Assembly: GCA_964247055.1 (NCBI GenBank)
Contig: OZ176052.1
Location: forward strand, 1,674,001-1,738,000
Length of the DNA stretch: 64,000 nt
Reading direction: 5' to 3'
Source of the DNA: Paragordius varius
Taxonomy: Eukaryota; Animalia; Nematomorpha
Each line of letters opens with the position of its first letter. The first letter of the stretch is position 1. The position numbers were made by a program, and so were the translations under genes. The notes beneath the pieces were generated by a model that was not told where the DNA came from, made no database searches, and was given only the letters and a program-made list of their open reading frames with translations. Shown one piece after another: positions 1,950 to 46,270 of this stretch.

Positions 1950-3784
1950 AGTAAGCGGCCGAATAAAGCATTTTCTTTGTCTAGGGTCCTACACTTTGTA
2001 ATACCGACAAATATTGCACGGTTGTGTGACTCATAGCTTAAAGAAATTATTTAAGGCCATAAAAGCATATTTAGGGCTACATTTGGTAGGGGGCCGCGAT
2101 AGTACCACTGCTATAGATGTTACAAAACTGTAAATATGAAAGTTATTTGTCTAATTTATCAAACATTTTAGGTTTTAGGATAAATTACCCTAGAATCTAT
2201 TTATAATATACATATTAAAACAGTGAATAATATATGTCAATCTAATATAATATTTTTTTCAAACGTGACTCAATTTGATATAATTTAAACAAAATGCCTA
2301 AAAGCAAAAAAAGTTCGTAAGCTATTGTCAAAATATTTTAAATTCCACACTGACCGTAATAAATGACATGCTAAATTATATTTTCATAGAAAATCTATCG
2401 AGATTTTGTGGTGCAATTATTGGACCAAATTTGGACAACTTTTGGTGTAGCTTTCTATACCATTTTTAGAAAATAGCGATTAAGTCAACTGCTTTTTCGC
2501 GAAAAATACATGAAGTTGCCTAAACTTTTTCTGGAAACGTCTAAACTCTGTAAAATGGAAGATTATTCACTTCTTTTTAAATGCGCCGACTATAGTCGAT
2601 CATCTTTTTTAAATGGACCATCCATTAAGCCTTACACTTGTGAAAATAAGGTTGAAAAAGATAAGTCCAGAAAATAATGTCTTAAGATCTCGAAAACGTG
2701 TGAGCCCATTCAAACTCAGTCTTGGAAAATTTTTATTTAATTATTTATAAATGCCCAGACTATCACCTTTTTATAGCCAAAAACTCCATCTAGTCTGAAT
2801 AAAAGGATTTTGAAAAATAAAGTCTCCAAGAATCATGTCTTTTAAACAATATTCTGAAAAACGTGCAATCAAAATTAACTTTTTTATTAATGTGTCTAAC
2901 ATATTCGGCTATTTTAATTTTAATCCGCTTTCCCGTAAAATAACATTTTTTCCACTATAATATAAATCTCAAAATAAATATGAAGCAATTTTGCCCAGGT
3001 TAATAGATTATAACAAGACAATAGTGTTATTCCCTATATAAAGCTAAAATTTTAAACAGGGCGCTTTTTCCAATTACGGACCGGTTAGAGGGCCATCCTA
3101 TGTCGAATAGACCACCATATGAAAATAACAGTCTTTGAAAGCCATATAAACCTATGAAATCAATTTAAGAAAAAAATTTTACGCCTCTTAAAATAGTTGT
3201 TAGGTAGGGCTCTACCCTTTCTAAAATAGGCCACCATATAAATAACGAGGATTCAAAGCTGACTTTTAGGAAACATGGGGGACCATATGGATTAAAAATA
3301 ATTTTATTTATTTCTGATTTAAGGAAAAAATTTATGTTAAGGGCTTTTTCAACCATGGCTAAGGCCCATCGTATAATTATACGCATCCAAACAGATAAAT
3401 CGTTTTAAATTGTTTTGTCTTGTCTGACCTATTATTTTGCTAAGATTAAGTCTTATACATATATCTACGCAGTTCATGAGTAAAGGAATCTCTGTCGATT
3501 CGATTATTTTTTTTTTAAAAAAAGGTTGATGCTCACCATGTAATACTTTGTAAATTGACATTTTTATGGACACTTTATAAAAATAAAATGAAATCATCTA
3601 TCTAAATATATACCTATATCATAACCTCTATAATTATATATATATATATATAGATATATATGTGATAATTATTATCAATAATATAATTGAATATTAAGCA
3701 ACAATCATATTATAAACTTCATTTTCAACTTAAACATTCTAAATTTATTTTAACATCACTAATATCCTTATTTAAACTTTCATC

Positions 3785-6182
3785 ATGACTTTCTGGATTA
3801 GAAAGAAGAGAAATGGCGAAAGAAAAGCGAACGGGAAAGGTTTTAAATTTTTTATCATTTTAACAAAGCAAAAGAAAGAGTTATTCTAATTTCACGATTG
3901 AAATTATTATGTAATTTACCTATTTAATCATTTTTTCAACCTAATACAGTAAAAAGCCATGATGTATACAGTTTGAGTAAAATATGCATTGCTAGTTTTT
4001 CTTAATTGCCAGATAACACATATCGATAGCATAGAGAAATATTATTTGAGTAATGTGATGCGCTTTTCACAGCTATTAACCAATAATAAAGCTCTTTGCT
4101 GTTTCGTCTGACAACAAAAAACTGGCAACTTTCGTTAACTCATATGGCATAATTCGTTTAATGAATCTTTAGATTCGTCTATGCAAAAAAACGAAACATT
4201 TTACTTGTCTAAGTTTTTCTCTACTAACGATTTAATAAACCCAAAATGGCTGTTTACACATCTTAGCTTAGAGATATTACATGATAACTAGTAAAGATAT
4301 TTAACAATGTCGAAAAAAGTAATTGCTAGGCAAAAACGGGATAACGAAATAATTCTTTATTCCTTAAATAAAATTTATATTTTAAAATTGATTTTAAATC
4401 AATAAATTATTAAACTCTTTATTTCAATAAATTTTTATATAATTTAAAGATTATCCCTAAAAAACTTTTTACCAATTTTTAACTGTTTATTATAAAAACA
4501 TAATATATTTTACTGCTAATTACTATAAGGACTAGGTCAATGGTAAAACTTTTAGAATGCAACAATCAAATAGATTATACTTTTACTAAAAATTTTAATT
4601 TTTATCAACATCGCTTATTAATGAAAAATATTTTTGCTAATTGGATTCGAAAGAACGAATATAAAGAAAGAATAGTTATTGGACAAGGTTAATATGTTTT
4701 AAACTACAAATTTTTATAAGATATTCCATAGTTTAAAATACAAAATTTAATTTTAACGGACATGATAGTGTTTTTAAATAAAATTCTATAGACAAATTGT
4801 ATGTAAAATTAGTTAGTTATTTTATATTTATTATATAGTGTGTTGAGTAAAATCAACATATAATTGATCTAAATTTATTGGGTTTAAGAAGAGAAAATTT
4901 TCAAATAACAGTAACTAGTCTTAAGGTTTATACTAACGTCATACACTGTAAATTTCGATTCAAAAAGGGTATTAAGGCAGCATCTTGGTATTTGGATAAG
5001 TTTTTAAAATAAAATTTAATTATTAATTTGTAGATTTGAAGAAGTGGTGGCATCGTGTATTCGCTTGTTTTGGAAAGACGAAAGAGGAGGACGCTTTGAT
5101 TGGTAAGTAAATTAGTATTTTGCTTGGACCATATTAAAGTTTATAAAACATGCCATTAATAAATTAATTTGATAAAAAAAGTTGAATTTGCATTTAGCTC
5201 TTTCAAGGGCAAAGGTAAATAATAACTAATATTTTTGAATGGTGATGATTGATGAAAATTACTTTTTATTTTAATATGTGTACATTATATCTTTAACCAA
5301 AATAAAAATATGTTACTCTCGGCTTGAAGATCAAAATTTAGCTATGTAGATTCAGTTTTTAAAGTGAAATGTGGTAATTTTTATTACAAAACCAATTTTT
5401 CTCTGCATAAATTAGTTGTTTGTCCGCCTGGTAAGCCTGATGCGCTTCAAAAGAAATCCAACATTAAGGGCCGAAACGGATGCAAAAATGGTATTTTATA
5501 CATATTTTTTTAATAAAATATATTTTGTTTAAACCTATAATGATAATAAATGTAATCTAGATACTATTTGAGCCCATTTAAAATTAGTATCAATGTCAAA
5601 TTATGCATATAATTTATTATACTAGAACTAAATATCCCAAAAAGAGTGGTTTTCAATGAAGACGTTGAATATTTCCGTTGGACTCCGACTTCCCCTGTCG
5701 GAGAACTGTTCTATCCAGAACCTAGTTGGTCAGAAATCAATGCGATAGAAAGCGATAATTCATGCGATGAAGATTGTGCTTCGCCTGAAATAAACGGTAA
5801 TAAAATATTTCGAAACATTTTTTTCAACACCGAGATTAATGCAAAGAGCAATCATTATTATCGATATTGCTACAAATATTCAATTAAATGTAGAAAAAAC
5901 TGTTCCGAAAAGAACAGTAAGATTCAATGACGAACCTCAGTATTTTACATGGACCCCTTCACCTTGTGATGAGCTGTCTCTAGATTCAGGCTTACCAGGA
6001 ATAGCTTTGTTGGAATGCAAGGGTGGTACATGCGATTATGAACCTGTGGTGACTGATTGTATTATTCGAGAGACATACAGTAAGTTTTAAATAAAAACAA
6101 TTATATCATTAAAACAATATAATCAAACATTTTACTTATTTTTTGATGTTTAGGGCTTTTTTATTTGGAGACCCGTGTATGA
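3785..6182 (+). CDS. Unnamed ~194-aa protein with two RVxF (PP1-docking) modules and C-terminal ETRV, copy 1; spliced
   Basis: Exons 3785-3839, 5034-5102, 5416-5490, 5626-5796, 5894-6079, 6154-6182. All introns are GT-AG and phase 1, and the joined frame is open to TGA (585 nt). Exon lengths are identical in copy 2, with synonymous differences in this frame. Contains KRVVFNEDVEYF, KRTVRFNDEPQYF and LETRV*. Confidence 0.8.
4621..4687 (+). CDS. Probable alternative first coding exon of the RVxF gene, copy 1 (MKNIFANWIRKNEYKERIVIGQ)
   Basis: Runs from ATG to a phase-1 GT donor that is in frame with exon 5034. An equivalent exon is retained at 37946-38015. Confidence 0.55.
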
Positions 6183-6199
6183 CGTTGGTTGGTGTGTTT

Positions 6200-7780
6200 A
6201 ATGAATTCAAATATCAAACACACATTATATATATTTTATGTATCATCATTTATATATATAATATATTCTATTTCTATATTCCATATATTCATATTTTTAC
6301 TATCATTCTTATTCTACAAAATACATTCCATTACATCATACCTCAACTCATCTCACCTAACACATACACACCCACACACATCACATGTCCTACTTTTGAC
6401 ATGCTTTTTTATATTTTACCCATCCTTACATTGCATCAACATACATATCTTCCATTCTCTATCCTTACAAATTCACCCAAGATTTATATTCATCATACTA
6501 CACTCACCTTACATAAAAACATCACCTATATTCTATCTATTTTTGGACACGCTATCTTTTATTCTATATTTAAATTAATTTTTTTATTATTAAAATATAT
6601 TCCCTTATTTTATATCAAAACATGTCCATTCTCCATCCTTACAAAATCACTTAAATCATCACATCTCTCTACCTTACATAAACATCTTCAAACTCACCAT
6701 TCATCACATATTTTTATTCTCTTTGATTATATTCCCTTACATTACATCAACACACATCTCTTACCACCATCTCACCTCATCTTACCTCTTACATATAACA
6801 AACTCATCACATCTATCCATGATTTTTTGGATACTATATTTTTATTTTTATACCATAAATAGATTTATTTTTTATTTTGATTAAATTTTATTCCCATATT
6901 ACCTTAATTTACATCAACACATGTTATACGAAATCCCTCTCATCACACTCTCACCTTACAACTCATGAACCCACATATCACATCACCTCTCTCCAATTTA
7001 CTCTTTCTTTCACCATATCTTTATATTTGATTAATATTTTTTTAATTTTACATACCTATCTTCACAAAATCACCTACCATTTACCATTACACCGCACCTC
7101 ACCTTACATATACATCATCAAAAATCTCATTTTTGGATACTTTTTATTATATATGAATATATTTTACTTTATATTCCCTCATTTTATATTCCAATATTCC
7201 CTTGCTTTACATCCCTATTTTTACAAAATCACCTCACCTTACATATACATCATCAACCTCATCAAATCTCATTTTTGGACACTTCTTATTATATATGAAT
7301 ATATTTTTACTTCAAATTCCCTTATCCTTACGATATACCTAACATTTATCATCACACCTCACCTTACATTTACATTGTCAAACTGAACACTTTTGAATAC
7401 TTTTTATTTTATATAAAAAATTTTTAATTATTCCCTTACTTTATATTCCCATTTTCCCCCTTACATTTTCCAAAATATCCTAACATCTATTGTCGCATTA
7501 AACATCACCTTACATCTCACACACTCATTACATCATCTCTCCTATTTACTTTTTAACCATTTTCATTTTTTATATTTGATATTTTATTATTTTATTAATT
7601 GATATTCCCATATTCTCTTACATTACATTAACACATCTCCAAACTCTTCCTTCCTATTAAATCACCCAACATTTATCATCACACCTCACCATACATATAC
7701 ATTCTCAAACATCTCACATTACTCAAACTATTTTTCCCAAAACTTACATTAACCAACCCTTCCAAAATGCTTTACAACAT
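6200..7780 (+). repeat. G-depleted degenerate tandem array (~120-147 bp units), copy 1; probable 3' UTR
   Basis: Sampled 60-nt lines have 0-2 G (6661-6720: 0 G, 18 C). Recurring anchors are ttttggatac/ttttggacac (6541, ~6825, 7131, 7272) and ctcaccttac. Confidence 0.9.
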
Positions 7781-10262: not shown

Positions 10263-13200
10263 TTAATTGACAATAATCATTTTAAAATAATGTGTGAAAT
10301 CAGTGATATGAGTGAATTGTTGAAATACAAGGCTTAATTGATTAACAAGCATGTCTGATAAATGTATTTTCTCCTTAACTAAAAGTTCCAGGAAAGCAAA
10401 CGTAATTTTCATCCATATACATTTGTGCATTTCATTATCCTAATCATAAAATTTAAAATATAACCAACAAAAGTTAAATAGGTTATGGATAAAAAATGTC
10501 TTGACAGGTGATGGTTTTTTTAGTTTCAGTAAAAAAATTTAAATAAGCGAGATTAACAGCGTTTTCAATAGATTTTTTTGAAAAATAAAAATTAACTTGA
10601 CAAAAAGCCCTTTAAAAATTTGCAAATTAGAAAATTTCAATCACCTATAATTCTATTTAAAGCAAAGTTAAAATATATACTAATATATTAACAAAAATAA
10701 AAAAACTCAAAGAGTATTTTTTGTGTCAAATAACCTTTTGTAAAGAATCTAAATGACTTTCAATTTGTCGAGGATGGTGTGACATAATAAATTTATCAAA
10801 ATGTTGAATGTTTACGACAGGGCTTGTTTCCTGTTCCAAATTAAGGCTTTTCTGTTTTCGTATTATGGGTTGTTTTTGATTTTTTTCCAATCTTTTATGG
10901 GTGGAAATCGAAGATTTTATTCCGCGTGTAGTTATATTTGACAATGTAATATTTTTATTTGAAGGGACAGGAGTGTTGGAAAAAAGATTGGCAAATGTCA
11001 GTGGTGTGGTACAACTACTAAAGCGTTTATTTTTACTCTTATTGTTTTTCGGTAAAGATGGTTTTCTGTATATATAAATATATATACCATTTACAGTTTA
11101 AATTCAACCTTGAACAATTCGAATTCACCCTAAAATAAATTATGGATTTTCGAGATTAAAATTCACCTTTATTTTATAATATTTTCACAAAATATGGAAT
11201 TCTGTTTAAATGCTGAAAAAATAATAAACTATGTCGTAAAAATATATTTCATATTAATGGTGAGTTATATTATCCCGAAATCACAATCGATTTTTTTAGG
11301 GTTAATTTGAATTGTTCGAGGGTGAATTTGAATTGTAAATATATATTATATCAAATTATTTATAAATAATGGATAGTAACTATAATATATTATGAAGGCC
11401 TAACCTATATTGCCGTTTCTATAATTTATGACTTTTGAAAAATTTATAGCGTGTTTATAGATTCCAATCTCTTTGTATGGTTAAAAAATTAAATTATCAT
11501 AGTCAATATTAATTCTTGAATCAGTCAGTTATGATAGAAAAAATTCCACCAAAAGGGAATAATATTATTTTAAGAAGCATTACTACAACTCTAAATTTTA
11601 TAGTTTCTTACGGCATACTCAGAAAAGTAAACAGTATAAATTTCTCGATTTTCACGCAACTTAACTATAACCTTCTTTCTGTTTTGGAAAACTAGATATA
11701 AATTATAAATATGATAATTGACTTAAATTTTATAGGGTTATAAATACTAAATGTCGTCATATGGAAAAAAATTTATATATTGTGCAACAATAAATATGTT
11801 AACTTGGGTTAACTTAATTTAATCAAAGCGAGAATAGTGAAAATAAATTTTTATAATGGTTATTTAAATAATTACTTAATATCTTGGTTATTGAGTACAC
11901 AATAAAATGTGAGGAGAGAATCCAAAAAACTCAAAAATAATTTGCAATCATCATTCAAGTTCCCGTTTGTGAGACCATCAATATCGTTTCTGAGTATATA
12001 TGGTAATGAGAGCAAATTATTTTAAAAAATCATTTAAAATGTTAAATGTTTTTTTAGTTATACTTACAAAAAATAAGATCATAAAATTAGTATATGGACA
12101 TTAAATAAAATTTGACAAATTAACTAAATATAGTGTTTATATTTTGGTTTCTTTTGTGTTGATATTAAATTGGAAAAAATATTTTTTGTTAGAAAAAAAA
12201 TTCAAAGATACCTTTTAACAGTCAGGTGAAACAAAATTAATCCATAGTAAGCAAATGCTAAACTTCCAACCCTATATAGATTGGGTAAAATAGTTGTTGA
12301 TTCAGTATTTTCCAAATTAGTCTTTGAGTAGGATTGATTAGAATTTTGGACATTTTCATATGGAATGCCGCTATTTTTATTGAAATTGTCCTTACTATTT
12401 TTAGCGGATATTATTTGGGATTGATGAATATAAAAGCATCTTTTAAGTAAAAATTTGAGACCAGGTCTTCGATCAAACGCACACGTTAAATGGTATGTTT
12501 GGGTTAGCGCATGCAATAAAAAGCTAAAAATAAGAGGTAATATATATATATATATATTTGGCGTTTTGATGATCACACTTCACTTTATATAATTTGTGCA
12601 AAAAATTATTTTTTTAAGTTACTTATTAGTTAACAACTAAAATATCACAATAACATTTTAGAATCATGGCAGATTGCTATTTTTTTTAATATTAAGTAAT
12701 TTGAAAAAAAAAATAGAATACCGAAAAAAGATTCAGCCATATAAAGTCATTTGTAACTATATGGCAAACTTTAAATCACCATACTTAATACCTAGGACCA
12801 AGATAAAAGCAAAAAATATATATTATTATGGAAAATGGCAAATTACTTAATTTTAGGAAAAAATATTATCATATCCATTAAGAATTCCCTACTTTTATAA
12901 TTTTTTATCATAACATTCGTAGTTTGATCTGGATGCTTCATTCAATCCTTTCGATATACTTATATTCTTATTTATGGTTGTGCCCCCTTGTTTGCGATCA
13001 ATGAAAAGATTGACTTGACTGGGCACAGTGTTAAAATGCGCCGTATTTATTATGTAATGACTTTGGCAAAGTTTTAAGGCTAAATCACCCAATAATTGGG
13101 TATACAACCACGTTCCTAGCAATGAATTAACAAACTCGTCAATGTACATTGTAAATCTAAGAGACGCAAAAAAATAAAATACGTGGAGAAATGATTGAAT

Positions 13201-16200
13201 ATAATAATATATCATAAATCTCTAGAATTATTTTTGTAATTTACAGAAAATTTAGTGTTAAAGCATGCTATATATATAATTTATTTTCTTAAATTGAGGC
13301 AACAATAAAAGTTTGATTCTTACAATTTAGAATAAAATCACATTTAAAAAAACGTAATTGAAAAAAGTGAAATACTTTAAATTAGTGTATATGCCTGATG
13401 CGGATATACTTATAATTTCATCCAACTTAGGAGAATCGTTATGTGTAGTATTTGCTGGTAGATGAGCACTTTTTATGACAGAGTTTTCATTGTCAAAATA
13501 AAATACCTAATTATGTAACATCACAAAATAATCCATTATAAATATTTGGATTTTAATATAAACATTAAATTAAGCTTTTTTATGAGAACTGTAAAAATTG
13601 TAATTATAATACGAACAAAACGTAAAAATATAAAGACAAATTTTTTTTTAAAAAACAATACTTTTTTAAAGCTTAGTTTTTCCTATATAAAGTAATTAAT
13701 TACAATCATAAAGTGCATAATTGATTGTGTTATTAATATGCATCTCTATTTTATACTTTGTAGTTTAAAACAATGATTTATATTAAATCGTCTAGCAAGC
13801 ATGGTTCTATTTTTTAGGAAAAAATTTCAATTTTACTGTACAAATGATTTTAATTTTAAACACTTTTAGGTGTCTTAAAAAAAAATTTAAAATTAAATAT
13901 CATAATAGTATATATCACCTCTTTTATCATATCCATTCGTAACTTTGTTTCACGTTTAACCCATTTATTTCCTGCTTTAACCATTGTTTTACTATCATCA
14001 CAGGGTAAATTCTCAAAATTATTATTCGAGTTAATTGGTAATACTTTTTGTCGTTTGTTGGTATGCTTTAAAACACCCAATCGTATATCGAAATTTAATT
14101 CATTCCCATTCATATTCCAATTTCCTGGTTCAAAAATGATTGTAATCAATTGACATTTATGCAATAAATGGTTTTGACAAGCCGACAGACACAACAGTAT
14201 TTGATCAATCAAAAGTTTTTTGTCAAAATTATCAATGTTTATTATATTGGTGGAACTTATATTTTTATTATTGGACACAAATGTAGAATCAGGATGGGTG
14301 TTGGACAATATTGCAGTGTTAAAAAACGATGATGACCATTGAAATAAATAGTGTCTAAATGGTGGAAAAAATATTTTTTCATCGTTTTTATATTTTGAAT
14401 AATTGGATGTAAAAAATGGAATAAAACATATTTTTTGGTAATTACGGGACTACACAGAAAAAATTAGCCCCAAATATTTAATTATATCAGGTCAAATGAA
14501 TTAAAACTGCAAAAAAATGATGATAAAGTAGTCTCTAAAAAATTTGTCATTTTTTACTAAAAATAACATTATTTAAAGAAAAAAGGGATAATATCAAAAA
14601 TAATTTGTCTATCGCACGTAAATTGGTTTATTGATATAACAAACTAAAATTTATTTTGATATTTATATCCTAAAAATAAAAGTTACCTTAAACTACTTAT
14701 GCTACTATTTATGCACAAAATGTCATTTTGCAAAAAGCGGTTTAATTATGTCGTTTCAAAATTTAACAATATTAAAAAATCATTTTTGATGTTTAAAATT
14801 ATTAAAACAAAATAATCACCTTAAACTACTTATGCTAGACGCAGTAAGGGCAAAACTGCGATGATTGCATACAGCCAATGTATATGTGGTTAATAATTGG
14901 GAATTTAGCTCTAAACAGCTGTTGATGGCTTCCTTAATCTGTGGTTGTAAATGCTGAAACTCTCTATTCAGTATTTTCTTTTCATTTACGAAATATTTCT
15001 CAGTTATTTTCAAGAGCGAATCAGTTAGGATTGCAAGCAAACTTTTAACATTTTCCACACGACTTGCAATGTAATTTTTATGCATTTTTTCGCCGTTTTT
15101 GGATATTGTACCACCTTGGGAAATAGCATCTTTATTTATGCTTATATTATTATGTGAAAATGTGTCGGATATAATACAATCATTTAGTTTGGTAAATACC
15201 ACCATATAAATGTTGACGAGATATGTATTAATTAATGACTCTTTATTATCGTTAGTGCCTTGTTGTGACAAATCTTGTCCAATCATCTCAAATATGGATT
15301 CATGATCTAAAGAATATATTAGTTGAATTTTGAAAATTTGTATTACAAATCATAAAATATTCTTACAATATTTAACATACATACCATTTAGTTTTGGTTT
15401 TTTAGTTTTGGCTTGAGAATAATATTGATTTAGAGCTAAATCAAAAATACGATCTAAAAATTTTGAGACGGAATTCGATATGGTAAAATTTGCATTTGGA
15501 TTGAAACATAACTCCGTTTTATCAATTTTACCGTTAGGGGGTGAGTTTGTAGTATAAATATTTGGCTAATATAAATTAAATAATATATATATATATATAT
15601 ATATATAAGGCCCTTTTAAATAAGGTAATAAAAACATTTATGTAAAATTTTAAAACCAGTTCTAAAAAATACCATAAATATATCGTCGTAATCAGTAATT
15701 AGGGTAGAGAAGGCAATAAAATCTATGTTGCTTGCAGATTGGGATTTTATATGATTCTTCAAGTATTGCTCGCGTCTTTGTCGAAGGATAATTAAAAGTC
15801 TATGGAAAAAATTGGTTTTATATAATAAAATGTCTAATTATAATTTAAAAAAAATTAAAATTTTATTTGCATACTCTTGCAGGTGATTTAAAGATTTGTT
15901 ATCATAATGTAAGACATTATTTGATGATTTTCGGCACAAATGTATGAAAAGCTGTGTCCATATATGGCATATTGGCGCAAATGCTTCATGAGTACTAACA
16001 ATCCCTATCAATAAGTTAATGCAAAAATTAATTTTTTCAACATTACAAACATAAACACATAAACAGAGTTTCCCAGTAAGCTGCATAAAATTCATTTTTA
16101 AAATTATATACTTTCAATAACTTGTCTATCCACATCTTTAGTATTGTCGCCGAAATAGAGATATGGAATATTGTCAAATACAAAATTTTGGACATAGCCA

Positions 16201-16634
16201 TAATGCAGTAATCGACTCAGGAAATCCATTAAATTTTCAGACCATTTTATAATTTCTTCTTTGCAAATGCCAAAGTTTGAAGTATCCAAATAGGCAGAAA
16301 GGGAAGTTAATACTTTAGTTAACATAAGTATGGTTGAACATTCATGAGCGGTTAAATCATACCCCTTAGGTATATAACTAAGAGGTGAGGTTAAATTTTC
16401 TTTCAAATTATACGCATTTAGTTTGCTACAGTGTTTTTCCACAAAGGCAATTACATATAATTTCAAACAAGTTAATATGGAAATTAGGCCTGAGCCTAAA
16501 TTGTGTTCTGTATTGTTAGTGTTAATATTATTATCATTCTGCGGTATAAATGGTCTTTTTTCAAATTCTGAAGGTTCAGCCGGAGATGAGACCATAATAA
16601 TAATCGAGTTAATTTGTTCAAATATCTATCATAT

Positions 16635-16690
<56 letters not shown>

Positions 16691-19600
16691 TGTATGTTAC
16701 ATATTAAAGTTACCAATGACCAAAAGCATATAAATAGATTTTAAGGTATTTTTAATAAATAACGGCTAAAAATTTGTCAAAATATAAGCTTGATCTTGAA
16801 TATATATATCGTATAACTAGTAAAAAAAAATTTGAATATAAAATAAAAAAATTAGAGGCAAAAATGAATTGACCTACTACCTTAGCTATAAATTTTTGTC
16901 GACACATATTGTTTCTTTCAACGCGATGGGGAGATGGAGATTCATTCAAAGTAATGAGGGAATCATCCAAAGCCAACATCATAAATTCATAGTATATGGA
17001 CATAATCTAATAAGTAATATTACAATAAAATATGCCAATATATCATATACAGTATAGTTTGCATTTTAATTGTTGCTTATTTCAAACTATAGTTGAACAA
17101 TTTGCAAACAGGAGTGCATGGAAAAAAAGAAAAGAAATAATTGTTTATTCACCATTTTGTTGTTTTTTCCATACACTACTGTGCATTGCAAATTGCCCTA
17201 CTGTAGTGTAAAATAAGCAATCATAAAAATGCATATTGTAATCACAAAAATCTAAAAAAAACCATATCAATCAGGAATTTTATTTTTAGAATTCGCCCAT
17301 TTTATAACCATACGAGTAAATTATTTTAAAAATTACCTTTTGATTTATATGAAATCCTGGCTGTTCTGCAAACGTAGAACTAAAAGCGTCAATTAACTTT
17401 TGGTTAATATCTAATACAGTTTTACAGTATTCCCAACCTATCTCCCAACCCATATATACCATCTGTAATATAGAATTTAATGCAAAATTATAAAATATAA
17501 AAATAGTACATTTGATATTTAGTCAAATCAATATATGAATCTTTTTTTTAGAAAAATTGCTTCTACAATTGAAATAGAGTTTTGTTTTTATTTATAAATC
17601 CATTGTTTTTAATCATCATCATTGTTTTAAAAAATTATATAAATTATAATGATAAAAATTCTGTAGATATAATTTTTACTGATTATTATTTTTATAAAAA
17701 AAACTTAAATTCTCTCTCCAACCTGTTTCATCGTTTTAAGATAAAAATTTTGCCAAATATTCATGATTTGTATCAATGGTTTCCCCGATTTTAGTGTTTG
17801 ATGTAAAAGTTCATATATTTGACTGATGATCCATTTTATATGGTTTAAATCAAAATATTTTTCCATTTTTAACGCTTGTTTTGAATGACCTTGTACAGGA
17901 TTCTCATTAACTGCCTTTGGCTTTGATTTTGATGTTTCTAGTAAAAGTTAAGTGCTTTATAAGCATTTATATACCATTTACAATACAAATTCACCTACGA
18001 ATAAATTATGTGTTTTTTAAGATTAAAAATTACCCTTATTTTGAAATATTGTTAAAAAATGAAATCACGTTTAAAGTTAATATAATACCGAAAAAATAAA
18101 AAAAAACTATGTTATAAGAATATATTTATTATTAATGATGAGTTATATTAGCTCGAAAACACATAATTTATTTTATTGTAAATGTTATATTAAAAAAATA
18201 TGAAATGATAATTAAACTTAATAAAAAGAAAATTTTAATGAATAAAAAATACCCTTTCTACCGATTATTGTATATTTATCTCGGTAAGCTTGTATATAAT
18301 ACAAGGCATATGAATGCAGTGATTGACCCAAAATTAGTAATTTTTCAAATTCGATCCCAATATAAAGATCTTGAAGAACTCTAAGGAAAGGAAAATGAAA
18401 AAATTTGCATTTTATAATTGACTGACTGAAATAATGATAAGATTTTATTTATGCTACACATTTTTATACTACAATTATTCAAAATCATGTAAAAACAGCT
18501 CAGAATTGAATTGCAGATACGTTTGTTTAATCTCCTTAAAAAAAGGCTATCCGGTTATCTTGATATAAACAAGCGTAACCATGTAAACTTTAAGTGAGAT
18601 TAATTACAATTTTAATATCGATTTAAAAAGTTAAATATAACTATAATTTATGACAATTTTTGTTAGTTCATTGCCAAAATTTGAAAAGATATTGTATTCA
18701 ATTAAAATTTGATTAAGCAATATCATTTTTTTGCTTAAATTTAGCATTACTTATAAAAAAAATTGTCTGATATTTTTTGACAGGAGTAAACTGTAAAAAT
18801 GGCCGCGTGTTGGACACCCGATATTTAAATGATTATCTTCGATACCAGAAAATAAAAGAAAATAAAAAACAACCCAATTTAAATTAAAGCCCAATCAATC
18901 AATTTTAGCTGTCCAAATTTTAGCGAAATGCAATAAAAATTACTTGTTAAGTTGGTTGAAAAGATTATTAATCGCAGGTGAGAAAAGATGAAATGGAAAT
19001 TTATTTATATTAATACTATAGTTATTATTAGTGCTATGAGGTGATGTTTTTGATTTGAATTCATGAACAGGATCTAAATTATATATCCAATGCATAAAAT
19101 TTTTGTAGGATAAATCTTGCAGGGTACATTCATTGCCAAACTTTATAAGTGAAAATAGTGTATCACAAAAAAATGTGGAATCAGTATTTGAAGTATTGAT
19201 ATCACCTTTTTTTGTGGATTGATTTTCATTTCCATTTCTATAGATTGAATATTGGAAATATCAAAAAATAAATATCTTAAAACAAATGCCTTACTACAAT
19301 TAAAATGCCAAACTGTAAATGTCAGCAGGTTTTAATCGTAAAAAGATGTCTTTAAAATAAAAACTGTCACCGATATAAGTCTATATAATCTAAAGTTTTA
19401 AGGCTGCAAAATATGAGATAAAAAAATAAAATTTTATTGTTTCAATTTATGTCCAATACGATTATTCCGACGAAATTTGATTTGAAAATTCCATTCCATA
19501 TATTTAAAATGCTATTTATTAATAATAAAATTACCTATTATTTTCTGTGGTATTTGCGTTTTTTTGATGAGGGCACAAAATTTGCCTTACATCTTTAACA

Positions 19601-22600
19601 AATGGTTCTAAATGCGTACTTGGCAACTCAAAAAATGCTTTTATCCGAACAATCATTCCATAAAATCTATTGAAAAATTGAAAATTAAATATAGTAAAAC
19701 TTTAAACCCAAAAAAATAATTTTACATTATATGATTACATATATTTAGATAATAATATTTCTAAGAATTTATAATTAAATTATAAATATATATTTTAGAA
19801 ACGTCAGTGTTAATAATTAACAAAAAATACAGAAAAAACGGAGGAAAAAGATTTAGATAAATTTTGAAACTCTTTACACGTTTTTAGGTTTTTTAAAGCG
19901 CTAAAATAATATAGCATCTCCATATTTATAAATTTGGGCCAATATTAACGGTATAGTATCAAAGAATAAATTTTTTTGAAAAAAAAAGTATAACCTTAAA
20001 ACATGGGACCATAGACGTGAATCTTGCCGCAAGGATTTACAGATAAATATTTTACTGGTCGTATTTTGTATCCCATATAAAATGTATAAACCAATAGCCA
20101 GTATAGTTAAATCAAACATTTTTCTACCATTCGTCGTAGATGTCCGTATATTCTCATGGGTTTGTTTCAAGCGGCTTTTTTGGGATTTTTGTTTAAATTG
20201 AAATTTTTTAGGAGTACTTTTCGTGTAATGTTTTAACAAATATTTGAATTTACGATTAGCAAGTCTTTTAAGTGACACTTGTCCATCCAAAATAGATGGG
20301 TAGGCGGTGGCATTAATATCCAATCTATTTGAAAATTTTAAGAAAATATATAATATTAATGCTCTAAGAAAAATAAAATAACTCATAACAGAATATGAAA
20401 AATAAATAAATTGGCTTTTGTATTTTAAAACAACCGAATTATCTTTTCCAATTGTTAACAAATGTAAAAAAAGTCTTATGGAAAAGATAATAAATCAATT
20501 TTTAAGTATTTAAATTTGATATATTTCTATTGTTTTCTTTCTAAAAATATAATAATATTTGATTTCATACCCCATATCATACAAATTAATGGTGGAGAAA
20601 AATTGAACAAATTGTTGTAGTATTGTGGAAAACATATTACCGATATAACATAAATGATCCATGTAATCTAACAATAAACGAATTTTTTATAATATATAAT
20701 CTTAAATTTATTGTTTTAGGACAAGTGATTTGGTAAAAATAATTATATTAGGCTAAAATCTATATATTTTTTACATGTTGAAAAATAAATGAACATTTAA
20801 AATATCTAAGTTTAAAAAATTATATATGTTATCTTTTGCTCAAAAACATTACTTATTCGCAATAATTATTGTTTAAGGTTAATATATTGTAAAGGAAGGT
20901 TTACCACATTGTGCAATTATTTGCACCAACATAAAATTTGATTCAATTTTCCGTAATAAATGAATCAAAAAAGAGTTATCTGATGATTGCCTTGGTAAGA
21001 AGGATTGTGATAATATATTTCCAGAATTAATATTGTTGTAGTAATTTTGTTGATATAAGGTCGACGGTTCTAAATACAGCATATTAATGAGGATATTTAA
21101 AACATGTTCCTTGTCTTTAATAATATGATTATAGGTGACACTGTTAAGGCTATTTTTACGATTGGGTACTAGGATACCCCCGAATGTTTTAGCATCGCAT
21201 GCACTTTTAAAGAACTGATCCAAAAATTTGGCATAAATTTTCTTTCGATCGTGATGACCTAAAAATATAAATATATATAAAAAAGGGCAAATTTAACATG
21301 TATAAAAAATATTTAACGGACTATATCAGGGGTGTTCAACACAAACGGCTTCGCCGGCCGCATTCAATAAATACATATGGGAATTAATAAATATTTAGTT
21401 AGATTTCAAACATAAAACTAATGTAGAAAAATCAAAGTGCTATTTATTTTGCCAATTTCTGATAGTTTGTTGCTATTATTAAAAAACCTTTTACTATTTA
21501 ATTTTACTGTTATTGAGCCATATTATTGCGAATTGTGTAATCTGTGTTAATTGATAGATTTCCAAAAACTCCGCAGGCCTCGGTTGTGGACACCCCTGGA
21601 CTATACTTAATAAAAACCGTTAAAATTGTTTTAAACATACCATCTTCGAGAGAATTATCACAATGTGAGTTAGGATTGATTGTTTGACATAATACTCGAT
21701 ATGAATGGGTAAAATTTGTGCAAAAACATTCGTGATCTTTATGACTGTTCAATGTTAATTTTAAACCTAACCTTTCACTATTTACGCAATCTAATTTAGG
21801 AAATGATATAAAAAGAAATGTTATACCAAATATCTTATGATACCCGATAAAACCTAATGAAAATCAGCCTAACAGTAAATTTTTGCAATTTAGACGCATA
21901 TATGGATATGTGTTAATTTTGAAATTATAGCATTCATTAATAATTGTAAAAACAGTTCAAAAAAATTTTCTTTACCTAAAAATATTCATCAATCATATGC
22001 CACCTGACATATTTTTAGTTATACCAATTTACAAGTAAATTAGCAATATAACAGCAAATTAAAAACCCCAGGACATAAAACAATGTACAAATGAAAATAA
22101 TCATTTAATAAAATGGACTTATTAATAGCGAGCAAGCGTTGGTTTTTCGGTAAAAAAGGCAAATTTCAAACATATTTTAGGTATAAAAAGTATTTTTTCT
22201 ATAAGCTTTTACCTTTAATAAAATTGATAAAATTAGATTTTTTGGTAGCATTTTCCATGGTGAAGGAAATAATGGGTTGTTTTAGAATGTTGTCAAATAT
22301 TTGAGAGATCCAACATTCAGTATATACCATGTTAAATGAATCACATTTAAAAGCTTGCTTGAATTCTTTCAACTATAAAATTAATATTTAATAAAAGCGA
22401 AATTTTAAAACTTGAAATTGCATATTATTTAAAATGTTATAAATTAATATTTATGTATATTAGTTGGGGGACGGATTAAAATTTATTTTTTTTTAAAATA
22501 ATGAAATAATAACCAAAAATATATAAAAAAAATAAAAATATATATATATATATTTAAACATTTTTAGGCTCTACTATAAAATAATTACCAGTTCATCTTG

Positions 22601-25600
22601 TATTAAAATATTCCCTTCGGTAATAAATTTTTGTACAATGTAATCCAAACATAGCGATTGAAATGTTGTGAAATATATAAAATCCGCATTAAAGAAATGA
22701 TTTTGTACTTCATTTTTATTATTAAAGTTATGTTCGAAACTAAATTCATCCTTTTCAAGAGCTAAAAAAATGATCAAAAAGGATTATTATATTTTAGTAG
22801 ATTTATAAACGTTTCAAAAGTTATTTATAATTCAAATACGTATAACTACTTTTAATTTAAAGTCTATAAATTAATTTATCCATAAAGTTAAAGATGGTAG
22901 TCATTAAAAAAAATGGCAAAATAAACAATTTTTTCAATAATTATTACAATTTTATAGATATTTTTAGGCAAAAAAGCAAAATGTAATAATTTGCAAAAGC
23001 CTTTAATAAATTTATTGAATAAAAATTATAACAAAAAAGGAAAAATTCATAATATTTGAAAAAATGTTTATGATACCTGATCATATAAGACAATGACAGA
23101 CAATAGGAATACAAAAGAAAGGAAATTTAACATGACATCAAAACACAAATATCCATGCAACAGTATTACACTAATATATTTAAAAAAATTATATAAATCT
23201 ATATATAAAAGCAAAAAATCTAGTGGTATTCCAGTGTATGCATTTTTGATAATTTTTTTTAAAATAATTTAAAAACTGATTAGATAAACGGGTTATTAAA
23301 CCATACTTATATAAAAATTAGTTCTATTTCTTGTATACCATAATTAAATATATAATCAATAATAGATAAGAACGCTGATTTTAAAAAATGTTTAGGCTTT
23401 AAGTGATATATCATTTATAAGGTTCTTATGTTAAGTTATAATGATATAACCGAAATATTGATAAAAATCAGCTGTTTATCGCATTTTCTCTTTCAAACTT
23501 AATTCGTTCTAAATATAACACCGAAAAAAGTAATCCAACCCATTCACTTTATCCAAAAAACTTTTTTTATTAATCATTTACTAAATTTTCGTTTCATACC
23601 ATGATATTGAGAGTAGAATTGTGAACTAAACTGTATTAAAGCCAAATCGATTTCAACACCCGACCTTAAATGCATTAAAATTCCGGTTTCTGGATGACAC
23701 AAACGAGTACGTATTTGAGTGAGAAGGTTTGTCACCAAATGACTTTTTCCCATTTCCTGTTTCACAAAAAAAGTAAATTTTTTTCAATTATTGTTTATTA
23801 TAATTAAAAACTGAATATAATAGGACGGCCCAAAAAAATAATATTCGTTGAGAATATACCATTTGCACTTTAAGAGTGTCCTTGAACACTTCAGGTTGGT
23901 CCTTGAACACTTTAAGTTTTTCCTTGAACATTTCAAGTAGGTTCTTCAACATATCAAGTTTCCTTGAACATTACAGGTGGGTCCTTTGATATTTTTGTTT
24001 TGTTTTTAACTTTTATCAATCAAATCGTATATCATTCATCTAATGTATCGTTTTTAACCTATTTTTTATTATTTACGATAAATTTTAAATCAATATCAAC
24101 TTTTAATCATTGACCGTATATCTTTATTAATATCTTATAATTAATTTTGATATTTATAAGATTTTTTTAAAACGTAATTAAAAAATATATAAGTTTCCTG
24201 AGGTATTATTTACAATTATTTTGAAAACATTTATAAGTTTATAATTTTTTGGAAAAAAACTAGTTTGAAACAAAAAAGTAGTTTTTGAATAAAATTTTTT
24301 ATTTTTAAATGAATAAATATATAAATAAAGAAAATTAGGTAAAAAAATTAAAATTAAAAAATACATGCAAAAATTATGGTTAAATCAAAATTTAAAAATT
24401 TTAAGGACCAACTTGAAGTGTTCAAGGACAAACTTAAATTGTTCAAGGACCAACTTGAAGTGTTAAAGGACACTCTTGAAGGTATACTTATGAATGCAGT
24501 CATTTATGATTATAAACAATTAATAAGATTACAATCGGAAAAAATTATAATTAATTGCAAAACAAATAATTTAACCAAAATAATATATAATTAATTAATA
24601 CTCTTATTATTATTATATGTAGTTTTATATATGTATGTATCACATATTAATTGATAATGTTCAAAATTCTGATTGATTATTTTTATAATCCTAACCTAAA
24701 CCAGCTATCTACGACTAAAATTTAACAAATTAAAATATTATTACTTTCCCAGTTGTTAATTTAACCCTATTATATTTTTCAATGTTAATCATATAATTAT
24801 GTTTTAAAGTGAAAATACCATTTGTCCATCCTTAAACTTTTTCTCTTCTACCATTTGTCTTATTGAAGTGAAATGCAATTTTTGTTTGGAGTTTATTTGC
24901 TGGTTTAAATCCAAAGATATTTCGGTAAATATTGCCTCATCAACTTTAGAGATTTTAGTCTTATTTTCTTTGTGGGCGCTATGATCTATAAAAAATTTGT
25001 GGTGAAAAAGCATTAAAATTTTTACTTTAATTAGATCAAAAATTATTACTTTTAATATTGTTAAAATAAATAGATATAATGTTTTTTCGTTTAATCGCTA
25101 AAATCTCTGAGGTTAATTTATTAAAATAACTTTTTATATAATAATTTTTACCATAAAAATAAAAAAAAATAAAAGGTTTGGTATTGTGTGTTTTGGGGTA
25201 TTCTATATAGCATAAAGTTGCGTTTTTAATATTGCAATATAATAAAAAATATACTTAACAAAAACACGCAAGATTATTAGCCAAAAAATATATTTTAAAA
25301 GAATTAAAGTATACTATCCAAACTTCCAATGACACCAGGTGTAGTTCCATGATTTGAAAGCTGAGTTCCAAAATCAAAAATATCGCATATATCTTCATCT
25401 GTTTCCGATGATTCATTATTTTCATGAGGAGTTAAATCATTTTCTTGGAAATTTACCATATTATTATTGCTAGATAAATCATTAGATGAAGCCGTATATT
25501 TCATTTTGTGATTTTTATCAAATAAATTTTCTCCAATTTCGTCAAATTTTTCTCCGTTTGATGGCTCAACAATTAAAGCGACGTCCGTTTCTAATAAAAT

Positions 25601-28600
25601 TTCAATAAAAATTTAAATTAAAAAATAAATAGTTGATTATTTTGTTTCTCTAATGAATCGAATCTTTCGAAAAAGAAATTGCTTAAAAATATTTTTATCC
25701 TTAACCTTTCTCTGTATTGTGTAAATATTATAAACTAAAAAATTGTCGTTAAATGTTTATTTAAGATGTTATTAAAAGATATTTATATAAAAAATAAAGT
25801 TTTTAGGACAAAAATCTAATTAAATAATACCATCAATTTCTACATCGGCGTCCGATGGTGTTTCATAATGCGATTCGGTATCGAAAGATGTTTGATTACT
25901 ATCGTTAAACGAGCTTGTATTTTGATTCTCATCCTTATAATAATTGTTCAGGGTATATTGACAAGCCGTATTTTCTATTAATTTTAATATTAAATTTTCG
26001 CATGTGATTAAATATATATACCTCAAATCGAACTCTCTCTTAAACAATTCATATTCGCCCTAAAATTATGTGTTTTTTGGCTAATATAACTCAATCAATA
26101 ATATGAAATGTTTCTTTATATGTCATAGTTTAATATTATGTTATAATTTTAAATAAAATATATATTTTATAAAATATTTATTTAGGGTGAATTATAAATT
26201 TTTTCGAGGGTGAATTTCAGTTTAAATGGTATATATAAATAAGTTTGATGAGTGCATAAAAGTCAACCTTACATATTGATAACTTAGTCTTAATATTTAA
26301 TTGGTATATATTGTAAAAAATGTTTAAAAAATTAATCTAAAACAAACTATTGAAATCACTGTGTTATTAAACTATGAATTAAGTTTTCATAAAAGTATGA
26401 GTTGGGATTTCCCAATTACATGCTTTTTATATCATTTCGTTTTGAAGGTTACTTGCAAAACGAAAAGACATTTAAATGGTTCATTTGGCATAAGGTTTAT
26501 AATCTATATACATTGATCATTTGATATAGAGACCTTATATATATAAGTTTTTAACTTTCACTTTAATACAAATTTTATTAGAAATTACATACCTAATATT
26601 TCAATTCCATCCAAATTGTGTTTAATTGACTGCAGGGATAACAATAAACGATGACAAAAATGTATAATTGAATCATTTAAGAAAGAATACTGAACATTGT
26701 CACATGATAACATAGGGTTAGGATTACAAGATTGATATATTGTATTCCAAACGACATATATGAATTGAATTAACCTAGTTAGTTAAAATATATTAATAGG
26801 GTTCAAAAAATGTGTATTAAAATAATATAATAATGTTGGGAAAAGCTCTTTAAATAAGATTTGCTTTGTAAAATAAAATACAACAATAATATGATTTATT
26901 TGGCTATAATCATTCAAAATAACCTAAAGATTATATTATGAAGCCATTTTAATTTGGGGCGCTCTCATCCATGTATATAACGGACTTATAAAACCGTTAT
27001 TTATTAGTTTTTTAAAAGGATTAATGAATGAAATTATTGGACATACTCACTTACTTAGGTTCAAAGAAAAATCGTAGATTAGTAATATTAAAAATTTGCG
27101 GCAGTGCTTACTTAGACTTTAGTAGTTTACCATAATCTTTCGATCGAATGCACAGTATATAAAATGATGCGATTTTTTACTTTATATATATGTAAAAAAA
27201 ACTTGCAGAATAGATGTTTTCGAAAAATATCAGAAAAACTATAGCCTTTGCAGAGTTCACCAAAAGTGATTTAACAACATCACAAAACTAATAAAGGTTT
27301 ATAAAAAGCTTTAAATTAATTACATTTGTATCATATCCATATCATAGATACCATTTTCCAAAACATAAAACCAATAATATTCTTTTTCCGGAATTTCAAT
27401 TTTTTGATCTATGAAACTCTCATGTTGATGATGTATAGTTAAAATAGTGTATAAAGTTTGCGGTTCAATTAAATTGCATACTGTTTGCTTAATGAATAAC
27501 TTTAAACCTTTGCAGACTATATTTGAATCATTAACATTGGCATTATTGGGTAATAGAGTTGAATTGAAATAATTAGCATGTGCACATAGAGCGGATTGCA
27601 TCAAGGATTGCCAAATTAGACTGAGGGCCCCACCAGTAGTAATGTTTCCACCCTTTTTTTCTTCCCCTAACAATATTATAAATGGTTAAATTCTTTAATT
27701 TTTACACAATATAGAAAAACGTTTTTTTAAATTTCTATATCTATGTCGTTATAAAAATGCAAATGAAACTTTATTTGTGGGAAAAAATCCAAAAAAGGTT
27801 TTTCATGTATAGGTATAGATGTAAAAATAAACTTCTCAAATAGAAAAAACGTTTAAAATATGTTGTAAAATATCAATTTGCCTTTGAAAACATTTCATGC
27901 CGGGTTTAGTGTGCAAAAAATATTATTGAACAAAAACGGATCAAAAAAACTTATTTTTTACAAAACAAAAGCGGTAAAAACGTTTTAATTTTAAATACTC
28001 AACACACATAAAAATTAGAGTGTATAACCCAAAACTTGTGAAAGCTAAGAAAAAAATGCTAAAATTATTAATTATTTTAATATAAATATTAACTCACCTT
28101 TAGTGTGCCCAATATAAAGACAAATGTGATACAATAATTGATTGATTGAATAATAATAATCTGGCCTAAGGAATAATGGACTTTCAGGGATTGAAATAGC
28201 TGCCCCGTTCCAACACACCATGGGTTTATCATTTGCCAAACAACTAAAATATATAAATAAACGAGGAAATATATTTATTCTTATTATAATTTCTCTTTGG
28301 TAGTTTTAGAGAAAAGATTAGTTTAATATAATTTGCTTCAGGAAAAAACGTAAAATAAAGACAAAAAAATTTGTCTAAAAGACAATGATACTTCTTAAAT
28401 CTTGATTGATTCCAAAAAAACTCATTGTTTTAAAGGACCAAGTGTGAAATAGAGTTATATAACACTAACACAACATATTTTACAATTTACGATTGTGAAA
28501 TAGCTTATATAGAAAAATTAAGGTTGAAAAAAGTAGGGTTGCCTTTTAAATAAAAAAATTTGTCTTTATATTTTTACGCTTTGTCCGTATAATTTTAAAA

Positions 28601-37162: not shown

Positions 37163-39404
37163 ATGACTTTTTGGATTCGAAACAAAAGAAATGGCCAAAG
37201 AAAAGCGAACGGGAAAGGTTTCTTTTATATTTCTCTTTTAATGAAGCCATAGAAAGAGTTATTCTAATTTTAATTGAAATTTTTATCATGTATACTTTTA
37301 TGTTTAATTTATACTGTTAAAGCCAAATCTAACACAGTAAACAGCCATATATACAGTATACAAGTAAAAAATCATTGCTAGTTTTTCATGAAATATTGTC
37401 GGGTCTTTGAGTGTAAGATTAGTTCATATAAGAAAAAACGAAAAAAATACTGCTGAACTTTTTCCCTATTAACGAACAAGAATCCAATAACCTATGATAT
37501 GGATGTTTTTTGTAAGGAATTACATGATATCTAGAAATTTCGGGCAAAAAATTTTAAAATGTGAATGTAACTTATCCATATCATCAAAAGGGTAAGTTAT
37601 TAATAGAAATCCAAGTATTGTGAATACCTATCAAACAACTTATTTTCTTAAGGATATTTTTAAAAATTTAGATATCCATAAAACAAATAAAATATATTTA
37701 TAAGGTTGATTTTTTGGTTCGGGGCCCCGAATATTACACTTTATAAAACTCATAATAATTTTTAACCAATTCAATTTGTGCAAAAGTATTAAATAAGTTT
37801 TATAATCTCACAATACTATAAAAATAATGCGTTTACAATCACCACAAAAACTTGATAGTTAATGATAAAACATTTTAGCATGCAACGCAACAATCAAATA
37901 ATTAAATTGCTTTTGTAAATTTAAATTTATATCAACATCATATTAATGAAAAATATTTTTGCCCGGAATCGTATTCTAAAGAAAAATTATAATGAAAGAA
38001 GAGTTATTGGACAAGGTTATTATGTTTGAAGCTTCGAATTTTTTAAATATTTTTCATAAAAATTTAAATTGAGATATCGAATCCGATGCATTAGCAAATA
38101 TAAGGGAATTAAAAAATATTTTATTATAGAATTAACAGAAAAGATTTTGTAAAAACTACTATTTTTTAAAATTTTTGTTTCAATTCCGAAATTGGCAACT
38201 GATTCAGAAAATTTGTTTAAGAATATTAATTTTACTCAGATTTTCTAACTTATATATATATATATATATATCAAATTTCTTGTGGGCTAAAATGTTTAAT
38301 TTAATAATTCATAAATATCAATTTTAAATTACAGGTTTGAAAAAGTGGTGGAATCGTTTGTTTTCTTGTTTTGGGAAGATGGAAAAGAATGACGCTTTAA
38401 TTGGTAAAAATTTATATTTTATTTATATTGAATATTTATTTATAAAAAAAGCATTTTTTATCAAATATATCTAAGATGAGTACATTTTTTAAAGACAGTA
38501 GGGCATAAAGCACTTGCGTCAAAATTAAGCTATTTAGAAACAATATCTATAAAACCTTGACGAATATTTAATAAACTAAAAGGTGGGATCAATATTAATA
38601 TCTAAGAAAATCTAAAAAACTGATGGGGTATTAATATTACGAATTCGATTTTACTGTTAAATTAGTTGAATGTCCCCCTGGTAAGCCTGATGCGATTCAA
38701 AAGAAATCCAACATCAAGGGTCGAAATGGATGCAAAAATGGTAAAAAATAATTTCAGATTTTTATTAGAACTAAAAAGTAAAAATAATTAAATATTTTGG
38801 GTATGTCACTTTAATAATATCCATATCAAAATAAAAATTTATCTAACTAGAACCAAATATCCCAAAAAGAGTGGTTTTCAATGAAGACGTTGAATATTTC
38901 CGTTGGACTCCAATTTCCCCTGTCGGAGAACTATTCTATCCAGAACCTAATTGGGCAGAAATTAATGCGATAGAAAGTGATAATTCATGCGATGAAGATT
39001 GTACTTCGCCTGAATCAATCGGTAAAATAAATATTTCGAAACATTTTTTACAACAGGGACATTAATGCAAAAAGCAATTATTTTTATTGATATTGCTACA
39101 AAATTTATTCAATTAAATGTAGAAAAAACTGTTCCAAAAAGAACAGTAAGATTCAATGACGAACCTCAGTATTTTACATGGACCCCTTCACCTTGTGAGG
39201 AACCATCTCCAGATTCAGGCTTACCAGGAATAGCTTTGTTGGAATGCAAGGGTTGTACATGTGATTATGAATCTGTGATGACTGATTGTGTTATTCGAGA
39301 AACATACAGTAAGTTTAAAATAACACTTTTAAATTAACAATATAATTAAACTTTTTTTTATTTTTTGATGTTTAGGGGTCTTTTATTTGGAGACCCGTGT
39401 ATGA
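37163..39404 (+). CDS. Unnamed RVxF/ETRV protein, copy 2; spliced
   Basis: Exons 37163-37217, 38335-38403, 38666-38740, 38851-39021, 39123-39308, 39376-39404; same lengths and phases as copy 1. Ends RVFYLETRV*. Confidence 0.8.
37946..38015 (+). CDS. Probable alternative first coding exon, copy 2 (MKNIFARNRILKKNYNERRVIGQ)
   Basis: Runs from ATG to a phase-1 GT donor. An in-frame TAA lies upstream with no AG between it and the ATG, so it can only act as a first coding exon. Confidence 0.55.

Positions 39405-46216: not shown

Positions 46217-46270
<54 letters not shown>

Follow-up and report, generated by a model that had tools for sequence, protein, structure and literature searches.

A lineage-restricted family of small spliced genes in Paragordius varius encodes candidate protein phosphatase 1-docking proteins with paired RVxF-type modules

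The regions through which proteins bind protein phosphatase 1 (PP1) are usually disordered. RepoMan and Ki-67 dock through a K-R-V-x-F sequence with an acidic stretch behind it, in which +4 is hydrophobic, and proline-directed sites adjoin the string. The RVxF consensus is [K/R]-x(0-1)-[V/I/L]-x-[F/W], with a hydrophobic pair (PhiPhi) located 5-8 residues downstream and, in many cases, one more hydrophobic residue ("Phe") behind it (PMC10731240). In PPP1R15B, F643 belongs to the RVxF motif, Y650 is the second PhiPhi position (+7), and I652 is at the Phe position (+9) (PMC4394352), and in hPNUTS, TVTW (residues 398-401) is followed by YF (residues 410-411) and by F413 in the "Phe" pocket (PMC10731240). 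Phosphorylation by Cdk1 lowers the PP1 binding of RepoMan (PMC4703885). Here we describe a gene, referred to as copy A, that lies in a stretch of 64,000 nucleotides of the Paragordius varius genome (the window; C3:1674001-1738000), and the family to which this gene belongs. From sequence comparison, we read the products of this family as putative small, largely disordered cytosolic PP1-interacting proteins that carry RVxF-PhiPhi-Phe docking strings and are restricted to one lineage, and we give this reading a probability of about one-half.

Copy A is located on the plus strand at 3785-6182 and is composed of six exons, with a joined product of about 195 residues (Table 1). A reading of positions 3500-6500 showed that each of its five introns has GT..AG borders and is in phase 1. 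This reproduces exactly the gene model proposed in an earlier reading made without database searches (the sequence-only reading), and the peptides quoted there, among them LKKWWHRVFACFGK from exon 2 at 5036-5077, were found at their given places. The genome (110.6 Mb, 44 contigs, 25-28% G+C) contains 12 such genes, with 8 located on contig C3 within 330 kb (two of them inside the window), 2 on C4, and 2 on C5, and in nearly all of them every exon is open and every splice site is intact. An in-frame stop codon lies four codons 5' of the copy A ATG, and the ATG and its open frame are retained in nine paralogues. Alignments of exons with their flanks revealed that the AG/GT borders and phase 1 are retained at each intron in each paralogue that has the exon, that the exon frames are open throughout, and that all exon indels are multiples of three. 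Exon identity among paralogues is 68-94%; for introns of the C4 and C5 genes, similarity does not exceed that of shuffled sequence.

The exons are under purifying selection. The ratio of nonsynonymous to synonymous substitution rates (dN/dS) ranges from 0.15 to 0.7, with ~0.38 as the mid-range value, and is below 1 in every comparison, including that of copy A with the second window gene, copy B (0.30); the synonymous excess was significant in the independent pairs tested (Fisher P values of 2e-5 to 1e-2). The most constrained part of the protein is module 1, described below, together with the next ten residues (the GELFYPEPSW extension), each of which has a ratio of nonsynonymous to synonymous differences (pN/pS) of 0.30, compared with 0.84 for the rest of exon 4 and 0.62 for module 2. 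The last intron (6079/6154 junction) begins with a consensus GTAAGT donor and ends in a TTTAG acceptor behind a pyrimidine run, and if it were left unspliced, the predicted endings would vary from copy to copy. Its removal is supported indirectly by the conserved donor and acceptor, by the occurrence of an ETRV end with synonymous changes in ten genes, and by the variable intron-retained ends. Judged by the comparison of paralogues, on which the spliced model rests, copy A is a real spliced protein-coding gene. Its product is a small and probably unstructured protein; a secreted protein was ruled out, as the N terminus is without signal-like sequence.

Exons 4 and 5 each encode one module, and both modules read RVxF-x5-YF-x-W, with the Y at +6, the F at +7, and the W at +9 when counted from the F of the RVxF motif. 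The sequences KRVVF (module 1) and RTVRF (module 2) fit the consensus [KR]-x(0-1)-[VIL]-x-[FW] without a proline at x and also fit a stricter Hendrickx-type pattern. The RVxF-PhiPhi arrangement recognized in the sequence-only reading is thus borne out in both modules, with the addition of a third aromatic residue at the "Phe motif" position and with the spacing of PPP1R15B (PMC4394352). It was also stated that the RVxF and YF residues are unchanged between gene copies, which is true of both copies in the window and of most paralogues; over the 12 genes, the RVxF motif is retained in module 1 in all and in module 2 in 10. The conserved module positions are the hydrophobic contacts (V, F, Y, F, and W), and the intervening positions vary. 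A degenerate DNA pattern for the module core had four matches in the window, two in each of copies A and B, compared with 0.01 expected. Chance rates were obtained from shuffles of the copy A protein's own residues: 11% of the shuffles contained a strict RVxF motif one or more times and 0.5% contained it twice, and the full RVxF-x5-PhiPhi-x-Phi string appeared once in 0.15%.

A profile made from exon 4 matches the exon 5 sequences with E values down to 1.7e-8, and the exon 5 profile matches exon 4 in turn. The two modules can be aligned over ~29 columns, in which P, K, F, F, P, and S are invariant. The modules are thus homologous, and the cross-matching profiles together with the symmetric (phase 1) exons support internal exon duplication, the origin that had been suggested before. 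As duplicates of each other, modules 1 and 2 do not represent independent events. When folded alone and out of context, exon 5 gave a mean predicted local distance difference test (pLDDT) score of 48.7 and was predicted to be disordered. The genome also contains genes for PP1-type phosphatases. Module 1 is most likely the main PP1 docking string. In each module, the RVxF pocket of PP1 would accommodate the V and F of K-R-V-x-F, the PhiPhi pocket the Y-F at +6/+7, and the neighboring "Phe" pocket the W at +9, in the manner of PPP1R15B, PNUTS, and spinophilin. A family protein would in this way hold one or two PP1 catalytic subunits.

Several known PP1 regulators show partial likeness to this arrangement. 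PPP1R15B/CReP and PPP1R15A/GADD34 (PF10488) also have an RVxF motif with hydrophobic residues at +7 and +9; their PP1-binding core is disordered and their N-terminal part is membrane-associated (PMC4394352), properties that are only putative here. In contrast to PPP1R15, the family is not matched by the PF10488 hidden Markov model (HMM) and lacks an Arg-site residue, a conserved Trp at a distance of 19 residues downstream, and an actin/eIF2 end, and membership in PF10488 was ruled out on these grounds. By reading, no equivalents of PPP1R15B R658 and W662 were found, with +15 to +19 reading V-G-E-L-F (module 1) and E-L-S-L-D (module 2). The family protein further differs in having two modules rather than one, in being much smaller, and in ending in a PDZ-type tail. 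PNUTS (PPP1R10) has an identical Y-F-x-aromatic signature (Y410 F411 x F413 versus YFxW), which likewise follows an RVxF motif, in a region that is disordered in PNUTS (PMC10731240) and predicted to be so in exon 5 here; however, its RVxF-PhiPhi linker is 8 residues long versus 5 in the family modules, the family is without TFIIS-like or nucleic-acid-binding domains, and there is no sequence kinship. With RepoMan and Ki-67, the modules share the K-R-V-x-F sequence, the acidic/+4 layout, and the adjoining proline-directed sites, but both are large, single-module chromatin proteins without detectable homology to the family. Finally, neurabin/spinophilin and SCRIB couple PP1 to PDZ-mediated recruitment (PMC12185105, PMC13737739); these proteins have a PDZ domain of their own, whereas the family protein would bear a PDZ ligand and need a separate scaffold.

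The C terminus and the N-terminal region may bear on where such a protein is located. A class I PDZ ligand is a free C terminus of the form [ST]-x-[VLI], and the predicted ETRV tail fits this class. In 10 of the 12 genes (all eight on C3 and both on C5), ETRV precedes a stop codon, and the codons for E, L, and V show synonymous changes; among the shuffles, 2% had a class I PDZ tail. With regard to the N-terminal region, the membrane anchor proposed in the sequence-only reading stands only in part. A transmembrane anchor was ruled out, since the hydrophobic stretch is too short for a transmembrane helix, and what is left is a short basic/aromatic stretch with a single invariant Cys. This exon 2 patch is a 13-residue stretch that has basic flanks and in which W, W, V, F, and F would lie on one face if it were helical. 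Within its W-x-x-R-x-x-x-C-F-G sequence, the W, the R, and the C-F-G are conserved in all paralogues. The stretch is a plausible candidate for an interfacial helix with an S-acylation site, and S-acylation is plausible because a second subfamily has a Cys cluster at the same place. It is equally possible that the basic exon 1 could serve as a nuclear signal.

This second subfamily came to light with a module-only profile, which finds all 24 modules of the 12 genes and, in addition, seven weaker matches at C4:3.38-3.46 Mb. The latter belong to about seven small genes (C4:3382848-3458663; L020-L022) that have one module each, PKKSVTF-x5-YH-x-W-TP-x-SP, an N-terminal Cys cluster, LCCISSCCF (CC..CC), where the exon 2 patch sits, and three acidic FPEVEEIY-type repeats, with introns that were read as phase 1. 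Apart from the module, the only feature common to both subfamilies is an N-terminal patch that is basic and contains Cys.

With such features, the protein would be directed to a membrane, or possibly to the nucleus, by its basic N terminus, its aromatic stretch, and its invariant Cys, and E-T-R-V would attach most members to a PDZ scaffold. Phosphorylation of the invariant T-P/S-P sites by a proline-directed kinase would reduce PP1 binding, in the way that Cdk1 acts on RepoMan. Of the proposals made in the sequence-only reading, those on localization are possible but apply less generally. In its most elaborate form, in which an amplified, species-restricted family provides acylated, membrane-tethered bivalent adaptors that deliver two PP1 catalytic subunits (PP1c) to PDZ scaffolds and are freed upon TP/SP phosphorylation, we consider the scheme to be quite unlikely.

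Table 1. Positions in the window of the exons and modules of copy A and of the exons of copy B.
Feature	Position	Strand	Description
Copy A exon 1	3785-3839	+	Start ATG, 18 residues, mostly basic (MTFWIRKKRNGERK...); donor G/GT, phase 1
Copy A exon 2	5034-5102	+	Basic/aromatic stretch KKWWHRVFACFGK at 5036-5077; invariant Cys codon at 5066-5068
Copy A exon 3	5416-5490	+	Basic linker (PPGKPDALQKKSNIKGRNGCKN); splice sites retained, paralogue indels are multiples of 3
Copy A exon 4	5626-5796	+	Module 1 PKRVVFNEDVEYFRWTPTSP at 5637-5696, then conserved GELFYPEPSW, then an acidic, poorly conserved end
Module 1 parts	RVxF KRVVF 5640-5654; YF 5670-5675; W 5679-5681; TPTSP 5682-5696	+	In exon 4
Copy A exon 5	5894-6079	+	Module 2 PKRTVRFNDEPQYFTWTPSP at 5905-5964, then conserved SGLPG...EC..TC...RETY
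Module 2 parts	RTVRF 5911-5925; YF 5941-5946; W 5950-5952; TPSP 5953-5964	+	In exon 5
Copy A exon 6	6154-6182	+	Tail LFYLETRV; ETRV at 6168-6179; stop TGA at 6180-6182
Copy B	37163-39404 (exon 1 to stop)	+	Second unit of the 33.7-kb tandem duplication
Copy B exons	37163-37217, 38335-38403, 38666-38740, 38851-39021, 39123-39308, 39376-39404	+	All open

Searches for relatives were made with single exons by reference, and for Pfam and the Atlas also with a 150-residue open reading frame (ORF) of copy D (L009:1622-2071, minus strand). No Pfam match was obtained up to an E value of 10 with any of the exons, the exons of four paralogues, or the copy D ORF, and a word search with the exon 4 open frame yielded no candidates. 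An exhaustive hmmsearch with the exon 4 profile against 1.84 billion protein representatives identified no true relative; its seven matches with E values of 5e-5 to 1e-3 were rejected as spurious, being bacterial repeat-derived ORFs with FNPxSPCGER units. A profile search of the PDB returned one chance match only, and a scan of metagenome contigs found no relatives, results with which unannotated relatives in sister species are compatible, as the protein library also failed to return this genome's own gene. As judged from these searches, in all of which relatives were undetectable, the family is restricted to its lineage, in agreement with its earlier description as lineage specific. The family is to be regarded as new, whereas its kind, that of PP1-interacting proteins, is already known, and it does not constitute a new kind of system.

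A number of observations weigh against PP1 docking or against parts of the scheme outlined above. RVxF-type motifs give many false positives, and a loose RVxF motif was present in 35% of the shuffles. The earlier description of tandem RVxF modules applies to module 1 throughout, but in module 2 the motif is lost in both C5 genes (KNDIF), and the W of module 2 is replaced by R or S in copies C and H. The claim of a class I PDZ tail has to be confined to the ten genes with ETRV, as the C4 pair ends in EIDV, which is not a class I PDZ ligand, and the second subfamily is without an ETRV-type tail. Moreover, conservation of the tail may be partly noncoding, because ~15 bases past the stop codon are likewise conserved in the C3 and C5 genes. 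Two C3 copies (L011 and L012, at 1.823 and 1.901 Mb) appear to be incomplete, with exons 1 and 2 of copy F being unrecognizable within 3.3 kb upstream and copy G having exon 2 but a doubtful exon 1; these may be 5'-truncated copies. ESM-Atlas feature searches with exon 4 and with the copy D ORF both ranked clusters of PF10488 (PP1c binding) first, with scores of 0.80-0.82 that were also reached by one-third of shuffled proteins, so that this link is weakly supported and serves as a lead only. The HMM of PF10488 gave no match even at an E value of 10 with the exons of four paralogues or the copy D ORF. Lastly, the invariant TP..SP and the conserved GELFYPEPSW fall outside any described PP1 string, and they may constitute a kinase switch or the site of another partner.

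It is conceivable that the genes are real but that the module serves a partner other than PP1 and its likeness to RVxF strings is coincidental. The partner might be a phospho-reader of W-T-P-x-S-P (of the WW/Pin1, Cks, or F-box type), or the proteins might be mere substrates of proline-directed kinases. The TP..SP that follows the string is as invariant as the RVxF residues, known PP1 strings contain nothing equivalent to the GELFYPEPSW sequence behind module 1, and neither the HMM nor the PDB searches matched a PP1 regulator, all of which would be in line with this explanation. We nevertheless regard it as somewhat unlikely, since the conserved V, F, Y, F, and W sit exactly on the PP1 contact offsets (PMC4394352, PMC10731240) while the gaps between them vary, and since the full string is rare by chance. 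A different role for PP1 binding itself would be that of inhibitors or sequestering decoys, in which two strings per chain titrate PP1 and a raised copy number raises the dose. The small size and predicted disorder of the proteins, the tandem modules, the eight recent copies within 330 kb, and the absence of a substrate-binding domain recognizable by Pfam would all suit such a role; however, a simple inhibitor has no need for the conserved N-terminal Cys patch and C-terminal tail, which suggest localization, and no recognizable pseudosubstrate or active-site-blocking element is present, and we consider it distinctly improbable.

Two further explanations appear to be much weaker. One is that the family represents a highly diverged equivalent of PPP1R15/GADD34, the membrane-associated eIF2-alpha phosphatase subunit. 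The RVxF-PhiPhi-Phi spacing is the same as in PPP1R15B, PPP1R15 too has a membrane-binding N-terminal part (PMC4394352), and the Atlas leads point to PF10488; a search for PF10488 in the window's genome found none elsewhere, but control genomes gave none either, so that absence of PPP1R15 is not shown by this. Set against these points are the failure of the PF10488 HMM and, by reading, the lack of an Arg-site residue, of a W about 15-19 residues after the F of the RVxF motif, and of an actin/eIF2-binding end, which make such a relationship very improbable. It is just as hard to believe that the genes are unexpressed or decaying duplicates that were carried along by segmental amplification and whose ORFs are remnants. 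While two copies appear to be 5' truncated and the genes sit in a recently duplicated region, paralogues on three contigs retain the exons, the splice sites, and the phase with their introns at the random baseline, and no dN/dS value reaches 1.

Regarding the history of the array, the window is filled by a tandem duplication of ~33.7 kb with 85-97% identity. A search of the window's own genome placed the C3 copies at 1.61-1.94 Mb with identities of 87-92%. They form two oppositely oriented groups, with three plus-strand copies at 1.667-1.713 Mb and, on the minus strand, four copies spaced ~39 kb apart (1.823-1.940 Mb) plus one at 1.610 Mb. A haplotype or assembly artifact was ruled out, because there are eight copies with this level of identity and paralogues on two further contigs. 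Exon 2 is of two types, one in copies A, C, and H and the other in copies B, D, E, and G. Between copies A and B, the identity of introns 1-3 (window positions 3840-5625 versus 37218-38850) is 0.61-0.67, which equals the shuffled baseline, whereas that of introns 4 and 5 is 81-87%; for exons 1-3 of the same two copies it is 80-91%. This uneven intron divergence and the two exon 2 types suggest a mosaic history or gene conversion inside the array. Copy D has an open, in-frame intron between exons 4 and 5, which creates the natural 150-codon ORF across both modules that was used as a query above.

The 1 kb downstream of the stop codon (window positions 6183-7780) contains only 2.4-3.4% G in 11 of 11 paralogues examined, those on C4 and C5 included. 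As the tract is also seen in C4 and C5 paralogues whose introns no longer align, it travels with the gene family, and it is probably the 3' untranslated region of the family or a linked element. A large multiexon gene on the minus strand (12200-28000 and 44400-62000) was duplicated with the unit; it has ORFs of 114-186 residues, for which no Pfam match above threshold was found. Elsewhere in the assembly, mitochondrial COX1 (C44:7480-8820, L018) contains six TGA codons in frame, and Arg codons occupy positions where Ser is usual, a codon use that indicates the invertebrate mitochondrial code. The nearest database entries share only 76-79% identity with this gene.

In summary, if the modules do not bind PP1, the genes described here still represent an unannotated protein-coding family that has been overlooked by ORF-based tracks. 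If they do bind PP1, a phosphatase-targeting family would have been invented in one lineage and then amplified to about 19 genes, and its members would provide a compact two-module PP1 binder to set beside PPP1R15, PNUTS, and RepoMan. The family would then also be an example of how short docking motifs, together with exon and segmental duplication, can build new signaling adaptors from disordered sequence.

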